Sequence record: MZ443769.1
Direction: 5' to 3' (one strand)
Length of the DNA: 64,000 nucleotides
The notes beneath the pieces are model-generated. The model made no database searches. It was given only the letters and a program-made list of their open reading frames with translations, and was not told the DNA's origin. The first letter of the stretch is position 1. Every line of letters starts with the position of its first letter. Positions 2,246 to 25,142 of this stretch are shown here, in pieces. The position numbers and the translations under genes were made by a program.

Positions 2246-3271
2246 CTATTTGTCCAACACGCCACCAATCTCCTGAAACATATTCTTGTACACAAGGCTA
2301 GCACCCAAGTTATCAAGACGTTGAGGTGAGACATACAGGTGCGGAGTAGTGCGTATGTCTGACCACACTTTCTCGTTCGCGTCTATGCCACCAACAGTAG
2401 GCACAATGACTAAGCTCAAGTTAGACTGAGCGCGAACAAACCCCACGTCGATATGTCTCTTATTGATTTTAATAATGAGTCGGTTGATTGCGTCCAAACC
2501 AACAGGCACATTATATTCAGTATCACTCACCGTATTGATTAGGCTTATGAGGAAACCCTTGGGCTTACTGGAAATATCGAACAGATTGGTCTTGAGTTCA
2601 GCCAGCGTGTTAGCTTGATACTGATCTACATCATGACCAAGTTCTTTCAAACAGGCTCCGAGTGCTCTTGCTGATTCATTGTGTGCTGAGTTATCGTCAC
2701 GCAAGATATAGATAGGCGCATCCGGTTGGTATGTCCGTTTTGCTATCCTGTCGATAAGCTCACAAGAAGGTCGGCCGACTGTAGCAAGACCCTTGTTAAC
2801 GATAACGAACTTCGTCTTATACTGTTCATAAACAGATGGCGTCATGTACTTCATGTAATCGTCATCGAGACTCAAAATCAAACGAGGCTTAATGAGTTGA
2901 ATCACAAGTTGCACAGAACGCAATGCTGATTTGTATTCAGTGTCAGACAGCACACGGTTGATTGGAAGATACTGTACGAATACAAATCTTTCATCAACTG
3001 AATCCACTACAGAGCGTATCAGCGTACTGCCTATAGTAGGGCCCGCCGAAAATTGAGTGACAATCATCAAACTACCTTCGGCTACCCCATTCGAACTACG
3101 AGTTATTGTTGTGTCTGTGGAAGCAGAAGTAACATCCCACGTTATGCCGGGCCCGTCTCGTTCGGGATCTGCATATACATCAACTGAGCTACACCAGAGA
3201 CAGGCTCCAAGAAAGTAAGCAGCAAGATGTTTTCGGGATCTACTTCTGCCGGATTTATTGTCTCCGGACAT
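2246..3271 (-). CDS. Periplasmic-binding-protein-like (ABC_sub_bind-type) exported protein
   Basis: Signal-like N-terminus (KHLAAYFLGACLWCSSVDVYA/D). Segments LMIVTQFS...FVQYL...IKPRLILSLDDDYMKY and IYILRDDNSAHNES match, by eye, the periplasmic sensor domain of ABC-type binding proteins and sensor kinases. Start uncertain because of a 130-nt overlap with the upstream gene. Confidence 0.55.
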   Translation of the reverse strand: MSGDNKSGRSRSRKHLAAYFLGACLWCSSVDVYADPERDGPGITWDVTSASTDTTITRSSNGVAEGSLMIVTQFSAGPTIGSTLIRSVVDSVDERFVFVQYLPINRVLSDTEYKSALRSVQLVIQLIKPRLILSLDDDYMKYMTPSVYEQYKTKFVIVNKGLATVGRPSCELIDRIAKRTYQPDAPIYILRDDNSAHNESARALGACLKELGHDVDQYQANTLAELKTNLFDISSKPKGFLISLINTVSDTEYNVPVGLDAINRLIIKINKRHIDVGFVRAQSNLSLVIVPTVGGIDANEKVWSDIRTTPHLYVSPQRLDNLGASLVYKNMFQEIGGVLDK

Positions 3272-21403: not shown

Positions 21404-21822
21404 TACTGCGCCCTCATAGCAAATGTTACGGACTGCGTTGCTTCCAATTTCGGACAGCGCCATGAAATGATACAGGTGTACGTTTGTTCGTATAGTGAGC
21501 TGGCTGTACACGCTGTCTTCACATCAACAACGTCGGCTGTTATGCCATTCGCAGGGTCTTCAAGTGCGATGCGCATGTAGGTTGCAATCCAATCGGCAGT
21601 TGTCTGATCGAATGGTTCGAATAGATACTGATACACATCACAACCGAATGACTCACGCCACTTACGGGACTTCTTGCGTGTACCAACGATCATTAGAATC
21701 TTCTGGACAATGCTGTCCATGTTCTGCACGTTATCACGAGGCTCAAGTTGAATCCACGCATTCAGATCACAATAGACGCGCTCGCTAACAGGAACATTTA
21801 TCAGTTTGACGTAAATTCCCAT
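21403..21822 (-). CDS. gp25-like baseplate wedge/sheath initiator
   Basis: Start moved to the ATG at 21822 (ATGA overlap with PAAR). ILMIVGTRKKSRKWRESFGCDVYQYLFEP matches the GPW_gp25 pattern. Confidence 0.85.
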   Translation of the reverse strand: MGIYVKLINVPVSERVYCDLNAWIQLEPRDNVQNMDSIVQKILMIVGTRKKSRKWRESFGCDVYQYLFEPFDQTTADWIATYMRIALEDPANGITADVVDVKTACTASSLYEQTYTCIISWRCPKLEATQSVTFAMRAQ

Positions 21823-22112
21823 CAGCCGAATCTCACGTTTGAGCTTCCACCAGAAGCGGTATCGCCACACGAATTGCCGTCACCAGCACGTTGAGCAGGC
21901 TTACCGTTAACTCTGACAGAAGATGATGAAGTCGCTGTGCCTGTATGTGGAGGGCTATCTTTCTTCCAGTGGGGTTGATATGAATCTCCAACACGCACTG
22001 AGCCTTTGCCATTAACAAACACATTACCAGAAGCAGAAACAGGCACTACAGGGAAATAGCCATTATGGCCTGTAGAACGGTCTGTGCCTAAGCGAATCGC
22101 TTTTTGTCCCAT
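21822..22112 (-). CDS. PAAR-repeat spike tip protein (gp5.4-like)
   Basis: STGH, VFVNGK..VRVGD...H, VRVNGKPAQRAGD..SCG, GSSNV. AAGGAG RBS. Confidence 0.93.
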   Translation of the reverse strand: MGQKAIRLGTDRSTGHNGYFPVVPVSASGNVFVNGKGSVRVGDSYQPHWKKDSPPHTGTATSSSSVRVNGKPAQRAGDGNSCGDTASGGSSNVRFG

Positions 22113-22134
22113 GATAATCTCCTTTGTTAAGCAT

Positions 22135-22141
22135 AAATTAG
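22135..22141 (-). promoter_or_regulatory. CTAATTT motif (putative late promoter)
   Basis: GCTAATTTAT between a terminator and the PAAR RBS. Confidence 0.5.
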
Positions 22142-22156
22142 CTTGTTACGTGCGAG

Positions 22157-22187
22157 AAACAAAAACGGGCAGCCTAATGGCCACCCG
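22157..22187 (-). terminator. Intrinsic terminator
   Basis: CGGGUGGCC-AUUA-GGCUGCCCG-UUUUUGUUU on the minus strand, with G-U pairs that work on that strand. A T-tract also follows on the plus strand. Confidence 0.75.
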
Positions 22188-22219
22188 ATTTTTGCGCTTG
22201 GAATTTTGTCGTTGTCCCC

Positions 22220-22444
22220 TCACACCCGAAGCGAGTGCATTGTAGCGTGAGCTACGCAGCCGGGACGAATTTCAGAACTAGCCTCTTGACAGACTGGTTC
22301 CGTTCTCGATAGCAATCGACCAAGCAATGCGATTACTATCAACGACATAAAGAACAGGAAGAACATGAGTGCCCCTATGCCGTTACTACATTTCTTTGCA
22401 AAGAACTTTTTTGACTCAGAATTTTTGGTACGCTCGCGACCCAA
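22220..22444 (-). CDS. Possible small membrane peptide
   Basis: TTG start, or an internal ATG giving MFFLFFMSLIVIALLGRLL. One hydrophobic segment, weak RBS. Confidence 0.35.
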   Translation of the reverse strand: MGRERTKNSESKKFFAKKCSNGIGALMFFLFFMSLIVIALLGRLLSRTEPVCQEASSEIRPGCVAHATMHSLRV

Positions 22445-22519
22445 CTGTCACAAGTCTCGTACTTTCGATTCTGTTAACCGCCCGTGCCAGGAATTGCTCT
22501 TTGTCTAATCAAATAAGTT

Positions 22520-23350
22520 AAGGGGGAACCTATCCGACTCGAAGAAGAGTTGAGAGCACATCGGCATCTGCGGTGGTTGATACACTCTTTAACGATCATC
22601 TTAATACTACCTCTGTGCAAGAACCTGATCGACCGCTAACGATTCAAGCACAGATGCCACGAACAAGAAGGACGATATGCAGTTGGCACTGAACACACCC
22701 CGCTATGCACTCGGACATTAGTACATAGAAGGCTGAACACAGCTTATGGCAAAGCATTGAGTCCCCGTATCCCATCTGAAACAGGTCTAACTCAAACTCG
22801 ACTACATCCTAAACAAGGGCTAAGGGTTCCTTGCTCATATGTGCCTGCGGATGTTACTCACTATTTAACGATTCATTGTCACCTTGAGAAAACCTTTGCA
22901 GACTTGAATCGTCCGCTTTAGAATCTGCATCAGTTCCTCTCGCTGTAGTGGAAGCGTTCTCTCGGTGGGAATATATGACGAAGCGCACCCTGTTCAGGCT
23001 ACTTCCCAATGCGCACTAAGGTGAAAGTCAGAGTACGCATCAGGCAGCAGTCGCCGCAGTACAGCTATACCTAAAAGACTGGCCACAACACGGAGTTTCG
23101 CGCTCCACCAGTCTACGTGCCTAGAGGCCGGGTCCGTGCTCAGATAGTCCGTTGGGCTTGGTTTGCGTCAACAGCAGAGAACCGGTCTATCACGTGGGTG
23201 CAGGAGTTATTCCTCACTATTACAATGCCGGAGCATATCCTGCTGGAGGCCGATACAAATCAACGAGACTAAGTATCGGTAGTATGTCGCTATGACGTGT
23301 AACGAAAAACATGCAAACGTTACGCGCATACAGATATTACTATCTGCAAT
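22520..23350. ncRNA. Candidate large structured non-coding RNA (family not recognised)
   Basis: No ORF of 60 aa or more on either strand between 22445 and 23291 in an otherwise gap-free genome. More than ten nested inverted repeats found by eye, e.g. GGCATCTG/CAGATGCC 22563/22651, ACATCC/GGATGT 22804/22849, ACGATTCA/TGAATCGT 22868/22905, TGGGAA/TTCCCA 22966/23003, AGACTGG/CCAGTCT 23076/23108, CCGATAC/GTATCGG 23250/23273. Confidence 0.5.
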
Positions 23351-23381
23351 TCTTATTTACAGATTTTCTGCAAAATGGCCG

Positions 23382-25142
23382 TTAGAAATTCTTTCTTTCT
23401 ACGTTCGTGTACAGAGTATCGTACGGATCAGAGTACAGCTCGGAACTACGCTGCGCTCGGACAGTCACATAACCTGTGTGACGGTTGAACGCAATGATTT
23501 CAATCGTAGGCTGCTTCGGCTTAATCGTCGCATAGATAGGCGCGTTAAGCATAGGCTCGTCTGCAAGCAGTTTATCAACAGCAGGCAGTTGGGCAGCAGA
23601 CAGCTTAGGCAGATTGAAACGAATCTCTGCGCGAGTACGACCGAACGCCAGACGAATAGAACCTTTAGTCAGTTCACCACCGTTGTTGCGCAGATAGTTC
23701 ATGATACGACGCGCAACACCTTCCACTTGACCCCGAGCAGCAGGGTCCATAAGACCGTCGAAGCTGATAGCGCCATTAGGCTGGTTGATTGACAGATGCA
23801 GACCAGTGTTGAAGTAACCTTCAGCTAACAGGCGATACACTTCACGCGCAATCTCTGCGTTGTTCGTTGAGATGATTGGCGTTCTGATCTCAGGTGGATT
23901 CTCTTTCTGCGGCTCTGTGTACTCAACAGCACCAGAAGAATAGCCCATGCTAATCTTTTTCGCTTTAGCATATTTCGCTTGCAGCAGGCCACTTGCGCGA
24001 ATGATCACTGAACCATTCTTAGACAGGTCATACAACTCGTCTGTACTGAATGTACTGAACAAGAAGTAGTCCTGAGGAATAGCCATACGTGATACTGCTT
24101 CGAGTGCTTTCTTCTGCGCGTCTTTAATCGTTTCACCAAACACGATACGACTGCGATTCGGCTGAGCAGGACTGACAGGGAAGAACGCGCCGTACACAAC
24201 ACGACTATCTTTCTTAATCGGTTGTTCGGATTTAACCTTCTTGCCACCAGCAAGAGGAGGTAGCTTAACACCAACGAGCTTGCCTTTGGTGATAGCTTTG
24301 TTCGCAACAACAGGCTTCAATGCGTTGAGCAGTTTCGACAGGTCAGCAGCATCAAGCACCTTCTCCAGAGGAACAGCTAAGTTCTGCGGGAGATAGTGTT
24401 TCTTGCGGAACATGTAGATGACCGTGTCTTTCTTCAACTGAATCGGTGTTGCCATGTTACGGCCAACGACACCAACAGGTGAGAACGTATTTACTTTATC
24501 AGCAGCAACAGAACCGAACTCTTTATCGAACACGGACTGGCCAATGATGTTAGCAACACGCAGATGACCACGAAGCGTAAACACAATCTTCGGTTCATCT
24601 TTCAGACGCAGTTCATAACGATCGCGGTTGAGATACACAAGGCTGTATTTATCACCCTTCTCAAGTTCGAGATCGTATTCATCGGACGCATCATCGAAGT
24701 GTACTTTCTTACCTTGATAGGTAGCATACACACGAGGACCAGCAGACTCAGAAGCAATCTGCATTGCTTTACCGCTATTCGAAAGCGCTACAGCAAAGTC
24801 CGTTACAGCGTTTTGCATCTCCAGTGTAGAAGATACATGACGCTCAGGCTGAGGTGACCCGATTTCCAAATGCACAGCGCTTGAGCTGGACATGAACACG
24901 CTTTTGCCTGTTGGATTAACGCCAGCGAAGTGCATATCGCTGATACGTTCAATCTCATTAGCATTAACGTGTGGCATCGAGATAGATACGCCAGCAGCAA
25001 AGTCAAAGATTTCACCTTGACGCCAAGCATATCCGATGTTGTTTGAACTAAGTCCGATAAACGCATCGCCCACTAAGCGAACGGATGTCGGCACGATACC
25101 CAAGTCACGAATGACGGGGTTCAGCTTTGGTGAGATAATCAT
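23382..25142 (-). CDS. Hypothetical head-associated protein carrying the phage paralogue domain
   Basis: 586 aa. ATYQGKK...LEKGDKYSL...YELRLKDEPKIVFTL module and an IASES motif. Confidence 0.75.
   Translation of the reverse strand: MIISPKLNPVIRDLGIVPTSVRLVGDAFIGLSSNNIGYAWRQGEIFDFAAGVSISMPHVNANEIERISDMHFAGVNPTGKSVFMSSSSAVHLEIGSPQPERHVSSTLEMQNAVTDFAVALSNSGKAMQIASESAGPRVYATYQGKKVHFDDASDEYDLELEKGDKYSLVYLNRDRYELRLKDEPKIVFTLRGHLRVANIIGQSVFDKEFGSVAADKVNTFSPVGVVGRNMATPIQLKKDTVIYMFRKKHYLPQNLAVPLEKVLDAADLSKLLNALKPVVANKAITKGKLVGVKLPPLAGGKKVKSEQPIKKDSRVVYGAFFPVSPAQPNRSRIVFGETIKDAQKKALEAVSRMAIPQDYFLFSTFSTDELYDLSKNGSVIIRASGLLQAKYAKAKKISMGYSSGAVEYTEPQKENPPEIRTPIISTNNAEIAREVYRLLAEGYFNTGLHLSINQPNGAISFDGLMDPAARGQVEGVARRIMNYLRNNGGELTKGSIRLAFGRTRAEIRFNLPKLSAAQLPAVDKLLADEPMLNAPIYATIKPKQPTIEIIAFNRHTGYVTVRAQRSSELYSDPYDTLYTNVERKNF

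Follow-up and report, generated by a model that had tools for sequence, protein, structure and literature searches.

Comparative evidence for a large structured RNA with three homologous modules in jumbo phages of Erwinia and Dickeya

What, if anything, is encoded in the largest blank between the genes of a jumbo phage? The question is raised by positions 22113-23381 of a 64,000-nucleotide (nt) stretch of sequence record MZ443769.1 (the window; window position = record position - 62000). Its source is Erwinia phage pEp_SNUABM_52, which matches the interval at 100%, followed by phage Y3 at 98.4%, both being Sasquatchvirus Y3. In GenBank, the gap lies unannotated between a gene for a hypothetical protein of 586 amino acids (aa; 23382-25142) and the PAAR gene for the tail-spike tip (21822-22112), at the junction of a nucleotide-metabolism cluster and the baseplate operon, and every annotated gene in the window's head, tail and baseplate block is on the minus strand. 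The original prediction, made from the letters of the window, had singled out 22445-23381 as an interval free of open reading frames (ORFs) and as a candidate for an undescribed large structured non-coding RNA (ncRNA). Freedom from ORFs holds, as 22445-23381 has none above 54 aa and none conserved in relatives, and its longest stop-free frames vary from phage to phage. The extent, however, was drawn too narrowly, since the left edge had been set by a 74-aa ORF starting with TTG, of which the conserved part is only a 48-aa ATG ORF (22366..22220). As had also been said, the gap is the largest intergenic one of the window (the other sizeable one, 1902-2245, contains an unannotated 94-aa ORF), and the interval is neither AT-rich (GC 0.46-0.48, equal to the flanks) nor furnished with tandem repeats or iterons.

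Our comparison with related phages identifies the interval as the gene for a large structured RNA that a clade of jumbo phages infecting Erwinia and Dickeya has kept, its status as an RNA being a matter of comparative evidence. A blank gap of 1.3-1.45 kilobases (kb) is found at the same place in Sasquatchvirus, Alexandravirus (including Dickeya phage AD1) and Snuvirus, with synteny and size kept across the three genera and 46 records and with complete flanking genes in all relatives. Between genera, DNA identity of the gap is 54-60% versus 67-69% for the neighbouring gene, yet blocks of 80-90% identity lie inside it.

The signal that carries our reading is pair covariation. Three chunks, aligned with MAFFT from 14-15 phages of about 8 lineages, were scored for pairs with changes on both sides; positions are given in sense coordinates (s = 23382 - window coordinate, minus strand). 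Such changes affect 33 of 75 pairs in chunk 1 (sense 100-450; shuffles 15.7 ± 2.3, slid 6-14, 95.7% of cells paired), 31 of 51 in chunk 2 (sense 445-705; shuffles 18.7 ± 2.1, slid 9-14, 92.7% paired) and 32 of 69 in chunk 3 (sense 700-1000; shuffles 20.1 ± 2.0, slid 6-11, 96.7% paired), and in each of the three, not one of 500 shuffles attained as many. With pseudoknots included, compensatory pairs amount to 32/52 in chunk 2 and 39/79 in chunk 3, and to 104 of the 206 pairs tested in total, for which slid controls gave 6-18. The same treatment of two 1-kb pieces of the flanking gene, our coding control, yielded 33-40 compensatory pairs versus 132 for the gap. Conversely, substitutions in the gap have no 3-nt codon periodicity (p=0.6), while the flanking gene has a pronounced one (p=1e-104). 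The interval combines what is generally expected of structured ncRNAs, namely compensatory pairs beyond controls and no protein-coding signal. In sum, the proposal of an undescribed large structured phage ncRNA is supported: homologous PAAR-adjacent intervals of related jumbo phages, to which the original prediction had pointed as a check, abound in compensatory changes, and each test run that might have spoken against it came out in its favour.

As for the strand, the original prediction had left the choice unresolved, with several G-U extensions said to favour the plus strand. This was not borne out and we assign the RNA to the minus strand, like the genes around it, because of its invariant G-U pairs, the alignment-fold energy, the shuffle z-scores and an intrinsic terminator at 22187-22166 on that strand. 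Several G-U pairs are invariant when the RNA is read from the minus strand and would be A-C mismatches if read from the opposite one. The alignment folds at -459 kcal/mol on minus versus -385 on plus. Single-sequence folding, too, surpasses dinucleotide shuffles on one strand only, with z-scores of -3.47 (20 shuffles) and -2.61 (120 shuffles, 2/120) for minus versus -0.73 and -0.26 (the latter with 120 shuffles) for plus.

What does such an RNA look like? All of its features are on the minus strand. The predicted transcription unit of ~1.2 kb (22156..23350) comprises the RNA, a small ORF and a terminator in that order, its 5' end being placed by a promoter-like motif and its 3' end by the T-run of the terminator. 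The RNA body itself, of ~960 nt, has some 35 helices, many of them kept by compensatory changes. It begins with two 5' hairpins of variable sequence (23250..23330; sense 55-85 and 103-132), the first of which recurs in the same place in relatives with unrelated sequence and the second of which has compensatory changes in 9 of 10 pairs. Module A follows (23196..23249), with a closing helix GCAGG/CCUGC, an inner hairpin and a conserved loop GUAAUAGUGAGGAAUAAC; its helices (A2 helices 1-2) are 98-100% paired and show compensatory changes. The domain after module A (23006..23195) is made of a nested three-helix arm (s187-267), a helix (s268-306) and a hairpin CUGAUGCG..CGCAUUGG (s339-376), and A2 helices 5, 6, 7 and 9 have 12, 4, 7 and 5 both-side-changed pairs, next to invariant U-G and G-U pairs. 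Module B (22843..22937) is pseudoknotted and has a closing helix GCGGA/UCCGC (100% paired, with compensatory changes), an inner helix GAUUC/GAAUC (96% paired), a 10-bp crossing helix that covaries in 10/10 pairs and a loop UUAAAUAGUGAGUAAC. Hairpins between modules B and C (22700..22842) include a D-loop-like one and one at sense 651-682, with A3 helix 5 covarying in 7/7 pairs and helix 8 in 8/17. Module C (22566..22657), again pseudoknotted and with loop UUAAAGAGUGUAUCAAC, is homologous to module B end to end; its closing helix is 100% paired, its crossing helix covaries in 7/10 pairs and the compensatory changes are carried by 5 and 7 sequences. Module C is followed by a multi-helix domain (22413..22568; sense 814-969), which holds the second copy of the D-loop-like hairpin and in which A4 helices 7, 8, 9, 11 and 12 have 2, 8, 7, 5 and 2 both-side-changed pairs.

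Modules A, B and C are homologous to one another. All follow one plan, with a closing helix rich in G+C (GCNGG/CCNGC), an inner helix and, between the two on the 3' side, a conserved one-sided loop of 15-18 nt. In B and C, sequence upstream of the closing helix pairs with the loop of the inner helix to form the 10-bp crossing helix, hence the pseudoknot in both, while module A is the simpler version with its plain inner hairpin. The loop, (U)UAA..GUGA..AAC, occurs three times in the RNA (23222, 22867, 22591) versus 0.15 expected, and the direct repeats D2 and D3 reported by a repeat finder are these same loop copies. Modules B and C align full length across all phages. Moreover, when module B was the sole source of a covariance model (R1), the model still recovered module C of the window (22566-22657) with an E-value of 0.016, and its weaker matches were confined to the homologous gap of distant phages. 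(A joint model of B and C was not possible as MAFFT registered them one column apart, and the B-only model was used.) An element ..GUGAU.. is conserved 3' of each module and sits in a hairpin after B and C; tertiary pairing between the module loops and these downstream GUGAU motifs, sought by eye, showed no usable covariation.

Two observations touch on other RNAs. The hairpins after B (22752-22799) and C (22427-22463) have loops like those of the tRNA D-arm, more clearly so in relatives and with ..CUCAGUUGGGAGAC.. in SNUABM_5; this is a resemblance only, and ARAGORN found 0 tRNA or tmRNA genes in the whole window. Just 3' of module C, 13 of 15 aligned phages have GAUCACC and then an unpaired ACCUCCUUCGC (L010 ~2960-3000; A4 columns 152-176), which is reminiscent of the anti-Shine-Dalgarno sequence at the 3' end of 16S rRNA. 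The exceptions among the 15 are the window phage, with CUCUUCUUC in its place, and Y3.

Some of the helices that had been read by eye reappear in this architecture. CCGATAC/GTATCGG and AGACTGG/CCAGTCT are kept in relatives with compensatory changes, as are ACGATTCA/TGAATCGT and the CGATCA/TGATCG helix, and a hairpin is kept in relatives at the place of CGTGTAACG/CGTTACGCG. The long-range pairing GGAACC/GGTTCC is not conserved, and neither are GGCATCTG/CAGATGCC and ACATCC/GGATGT, both of which clash with helices supported by covariation.

Is the RNA transcribed on its own? A promoter-like motif AATCTGTAAATAAGAATTGCAGATAGTAATATC (23333..23365), nearly invariant in all core relatives, immediately follows the stop codon of the 586-aa gene. 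Yoloswag, SNUABM_5 and the environmental contig L030 have an intrinsic terminator ahead of the motif, and Yoloswag carries the motif a second time, 55 nt upstream of the small ORF. It is because of these preceding terminators and this second copy that we read the motif as a promoter. As it is single in the window, the transcription start site remains inferred. For the same reason we rejected it as a general phage promoter, the recurrent motif of the block being (G)CTAATTT instead, which is found 25-45 nt upstream of the starts of PAAR (22135-22142), tail sheath and several other block genes and is a candidate for the phage promoter of this clade. TGTAAATA has only 4 occurrences, at least one of them inside a gene. 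At the other end, an intrinsic terminator, CGGGUGGCC-AUUA-GGCUGCCCG followed by UUUUUGUUU (22156..22187), has 9 pairs that are 100% paired in 14 phages, and it is kept in Dickeya phages JA11 and JA29 as well. Just beyond it and outside the RNA, a boundary element (22113..22145) carries the promoter-like CAAGCUAAUUU and the Shine-Dalgarno sequence of the PAAR/baseplate operon. The RNA thus appears to be a minus-strand transcription unit of its own, starting at the motif after the 586-aa gene and ending at the terminator before the PAAR promoter.

In the window phage, this transcript would also carry the small ORF (22220..22366), which encodes a putative membrane peptide of 48 aa (MFFLFFMSLIVIALLGRLLS...) with an N-terminal hydrophobic helix and is mostly unannotated. 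It is open at 47-53 codons in 14/14 core phages and can also be recognised in environmental contigs, in SNUABM_5 and JA11, and in Yoloswag, where it is gp109. In its hydrophobic part the second codon position varies least, and its 3' two-thirds coincide with covarying hairpins (A8: 26 of 67 pairs compensatory), such that the C-terminus of the peptide varies while the RNA hairpin stays. A predicted hairpin covers its Shine-Dalgarno sequence and AUG (22344..22381; helix sense 1001-1012/1026-1038), with 12 pairs, 94.6% canonical, only 2 of them compensatory and 4 changed on one side, and the ORF domain as a whole is closed by the pairing UGUCG/CGACA, which is invariant. The peptide has no match among Pfam or PHROG families. 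In Yoloswag, SNUABM_5 and L030, extra genes and the second motif copy come between the RNA and the small ORF.

How far does the RNA reach beyond the core relatives? Homologues of the 586-aa protein with 40-51% identity occur in Yoloswagvirus, Rivsvirus, Salmondvirus, Yersinia phage fHe-Yen9-02 and environmental contigs, and in the annotated records of these distant genera a blank of 620-1000 nt comes directly after the homologue, often with extra small genes before PAAR. R2, a covariance model of the module A domain, matched a contig binned under 'Raoultibacter sp.', whose copy is an independent one (E 1e-21), the environmental contig L048 (E 1e-5) and Dickeya phages JA11 and JA29 (E 0.03), all of these E-values being rough. 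All of them are full-length matches to the gene strand that lie 66-70 nt past the stop of the 586-aa gene and have a compensated closing helix. With filters off, the module A model found no significant match in Yoloswag, SNUABM_5, L030 and Yen9-02; Yoloswag-type phages and the Yersinia phage do have motifs in common with the RNA. An apparent permutation of domains in the Yoloswag-type phages was set aside, as it probably reflects cross-matching among repeated modules. A 19-base pattern from module C had 28 matches in 185,579 bacterial species genomes, of which 27 lack the adjoining loop and are due to chance, the sole real one being the 'Raoultibacter sp.' contig, and 16 of its 18 matches in IMG/VR are real and all within the same phage clade.

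Does the RNA belong to a known class? Apart from rRNA, RNase P, tmRNA and introns, few large and highly structured ncRNAs are known. A cmscan of the whole window against Rfam at gathering thresholds, a check that had been suggested from the start, gave 0 matches, and at E<=10 the segment 22050-23450 matched only an unrelated small RNA (18.5 bits). The models of GOLLD, ROOL and OLE matched neither the window at gathering thresholds nor 22050-23450 at E<=10. A group II intron was rejected on the absence of an Rfam match (domains V/VI and D1-D4), of a 5' GUGYG boundary (the junction reads TAA-AATCTGTAAATA) and of an interrupted host gene, and a group I intron on the absence of a covariance-model match and of a split gene, the flanking genes being complete. 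Erwinia and Dickeya go unmentioned in the main text of a published survey of group II introns in 29,015 phage genomes (PMC12350094), and our literature search found no paper describing this RNA. We suggest, on the strength of these model searches, that it is a new class within a known kind, the large ornate RNAs, since it fits no curated covariance model.

Among its closest analogues may be GOLLD and ROOL, large ornate RNAs that often occur in prophages and phages. Like them, it is large and phage-associated, has many covarying helices and pseudoknots and appears to form a transcription unit of its own. GOLLD and ROOL range from several hundred nt to about 0.8 kb, whereas the present RNA is larger (about 960 nt) and, unlike them, consists of three tandem homologous modules. 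Hosts differ as well, with Enterobacterales jumbo phages for the present RNA and Lactobacillales or rumen organisms for GOLLD and ROOL. So does location: GOLLD and ROOL are typically near tRNA genes, whereas the present RNA lies in the structural gene block beside the PAAR gene. GOLLD and ROOL are reported to form homo-oligomers (PMC12286853), and OLE to form a membrane-bound ribonucleoprotein (PMC10898510). With OLE and OapA the present locus shares, by analogy only, a large structured RNA directly followed by a gene in the same orientation for a small membrane protein. In contrast to OLE, there is no model match, the 48-aa peptide falls in no family and is not OapA, and RNA and ORF are separated by other genes in distant relatives. 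The pRNA of phi29, a structural RNA of the packaging motor, is about 120-174 nt long, lies at a genome end and becomes multivalent by oligomerising. The present RNA would likewise be phage-encoded, work as RNA and be multivalent, in its case through internal triplication, but no similarity was detected at E<=10 and nothing ties it to virions. Finally, its 3' 250 nt alone recall hok-like type I toxin mRNAs in their short hydrophobic ORF (47-53 aa in all relatives, within the 60 aa or fewer expected of hok-like genes), long-range closing helix and terminator; a ribosome-binding site sequestered in the predicted hairpin would be a further likeness. Unlike these, there is no match to Pfam Hok/Gef, and the upstream 960 nt would be left unexplained.

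Taken together, we consider it likely that the gap encodes a new class of ornate phage RNA of ~1 kb, peculiar to a clade of Enterobacterales jumbo phages, that was born by triplication of a pseudoknotted module and that works as a ribozyme, an RNA-only assembly or a multivalent ribonucleoprotein scaffold, possibly linked to the membrane via the co-transcribed peptide. The clade in question comprises Sasquatch-, Alexandra-, Snu- and Salmondvirus and probably Yoloswagvirus, Rivsvirus and a Yersinia phage.

As to function, we lean, with moderate confidence, towards a multivalent RNA scaffold. Here, the RNA would act as RNA rather than merely as a leader for the peptide gene; it would fold through tertiary contacts into a compact scaffold displaying one surface in three equivalent copies, and during infection this scaffold may bind several copies of a single partner, which might be a protein of the phage or the host or else the RNA's own docking loops. 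We favour it because conservation is highest in unpaired loops that covarying helices display, because the unit is triplicated and because the RNA stays where the peptide gene has moved away.

Several points weigh against this reading. The adjoining 586-aa protein provided no functional lead (Pfam, PHROG, PDB, Foldseek). No terminator was found between the RNA and the small ORF in the window phage, which would be in line with a leader role, the promoter assignment has the motif as its sole basis, and we found no published transcriptome of these phages. The ~8 lineages are related, so that common ancestry inflates the cell counts. The alignments used for the test are also the ones from which the consensus structures came, which is why the same pipeline was run on the flanking gene as a control. 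Covariance-model E-values are, as said, rough, and Yoloswag-type phages are matched at motif level only.

Among the alternatives, one that we regard as rather unlikely although it fares best is that the kilobase is a giant structured 5' untranslated region acting in cis to steer translation or stability of the 48-aa peptide. In the core relatives, all of them, as in the window phage, RNA and ORF are indeed contiguous, with a terminator-free junction; the predicted hairpin takes in both the Shine-Dalgarno sequence and the AUG, the invariant UGUCG/CGACA closes the ORF domain, and the short hydrophobic peptide is conserved across all genera. Type I toxin mRNAs of the hok kind are heavily folded, too, with the ribosome-binding site sequestered until the RNA is processed. 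However, several genes part RNA from ORF in Yoloswag, SNUABM_5 and L030, the Yoloswag ORF has a copy of the promoter-like motif of its own, and no family, of toxins or otherwise, matches the peptide. There is no sign of an antisense RNA, albeit no search aimed at an antisense promoter or transcript was made. Moreover, 960 nt with three elaborate pseudoknotted modules would be far beyond any leader known to us.

A second alternative, improbable in our estimate, sees the RNA as catalytic, with self-cleaving or processing modules that would cut the transcript into pieces, or as an RNA-only multimeric particle like those of GOLLD and ROOL. In its favour, invariant nucleotides cluster in unpaired loops beside pseudoknots (A5 invariant columns), as in ribozyme cores, size and ornateness are comparable to GOLLD and ROOL, and GUGA (GNRA-type) sequences recur in loops. 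Yet no model of a known ribozyme or large RNA matches even at E<=10 and no signature of a cleavage site was recognised.

We give very little credence to a third alternative, a DNA-level element at the module boundary such as a replication origin, a pac site or terminus, or a promoter-operator cluster, although the gap lies between the nucleotide-metabolism cluster and the baseplate operon, is flanked by promoter-like motifs and, in its homologous form, contains the ends of the linear fHe-Yen9-02 record. What is conserved is pairing rather than sequence, with 104 pairs kept complementary through double changes, and the strand-specific G-U pairs would be A-C mismatches on the other strand. Iterons, AT-rich stretches and a change of skew are all absent from the interval. 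An origin or packaging region, which the original prediction had named as a possible refutation, is unlikely on these grounds. Lastly, a decayed or unrecognised protein gene (a pseudogene or a recoded or intron-containing one), as might be suspected from the small coding sequences (CDSs) scattered over the gap in annotations of relatives, deserves hardly any credit at all, given that these CDSs differ in place and strand between phages, that the absence of codon periodicity rules out a hidden or recently decayed gene, that the flanking genes are complete in all relatives and that no group I or II intron model matches.

The locus is of wider interest. Earlier classes (OLE, GOLLD, ROOL, raiA) each opened a long-running functional puzzle and recently led to surprising RNA-only architectures, and the present RNA is bigger than any of them. 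Its triplicated, modular design offers clear mutational handles, and its carriers are culturable lytic phages of tractable hosts (Erwinia amylovora, Dickeya solani), so that function is directly testable. In about 50 deposited jumbo-phage genomes, a gap that is blank or filled with spurious small CDSs turns out to be a gene, and a small membrane peptide, likewise conserved, is added that is absent from most of the annotations.

Several RefSeq records have small CDSs within the gap (L004 3349-3913, L005 3726-3869, L006 3171-3332, L009 3330-3479), which overlie covarying helices and are probably spurious gene calls. In fHe-Yen9-02, the annotated small CDSs 001c-003c likewise overlie the RNA. The linear record of this Yersinia phage (OR620964.1) has both ends inside the homologous gap, 663 nt past the stop of the 586-aa gene, be it at a real terminus or an arbitrary cut (OR620964.1 1-5909; L097 245200-248678). 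The 'Raoultibacter sp.' contig (L078; JAVWLC010000001.1, 34.7 kb), from an actinobacterial metagenome-assembled genome, has the module C loop in addition and is evidently a mis-binned jumbo-phage contig. Four relatives (AD1, 2910A, SNUABM_33, SNUABM_3), but not the window phage, have an extra ORF of 40-42 aa between the promoter-like motif and PAAR (L010 2377-2510; L011-L013 2369-2497).

As for the neighbours, the 586-aa gene is always immediately upstream of the RNA in the phages compared. Its product has a Pfam KMPT-N domain (residues 138-200, E 1.7e-18) as the only one recognised and matches a PHROG family without known function; it has no sequence relative in PDB, and its AlphaFold2 model is mediocre (predicted local distance difference test score, pLDDT, 66.6), with no Foldseek match to PDB below E 0.07. 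Elsewhere in the window, the other sizeable gap, blank in GenBank over 344 nt (1902-2245), contains an ORF of 94 aa on the minus strand (1898-2182; MNAKRIRIAILVVISLAMVSFIITAV...) with an N-terminal membrane helix, which is probably an unannotated gene.

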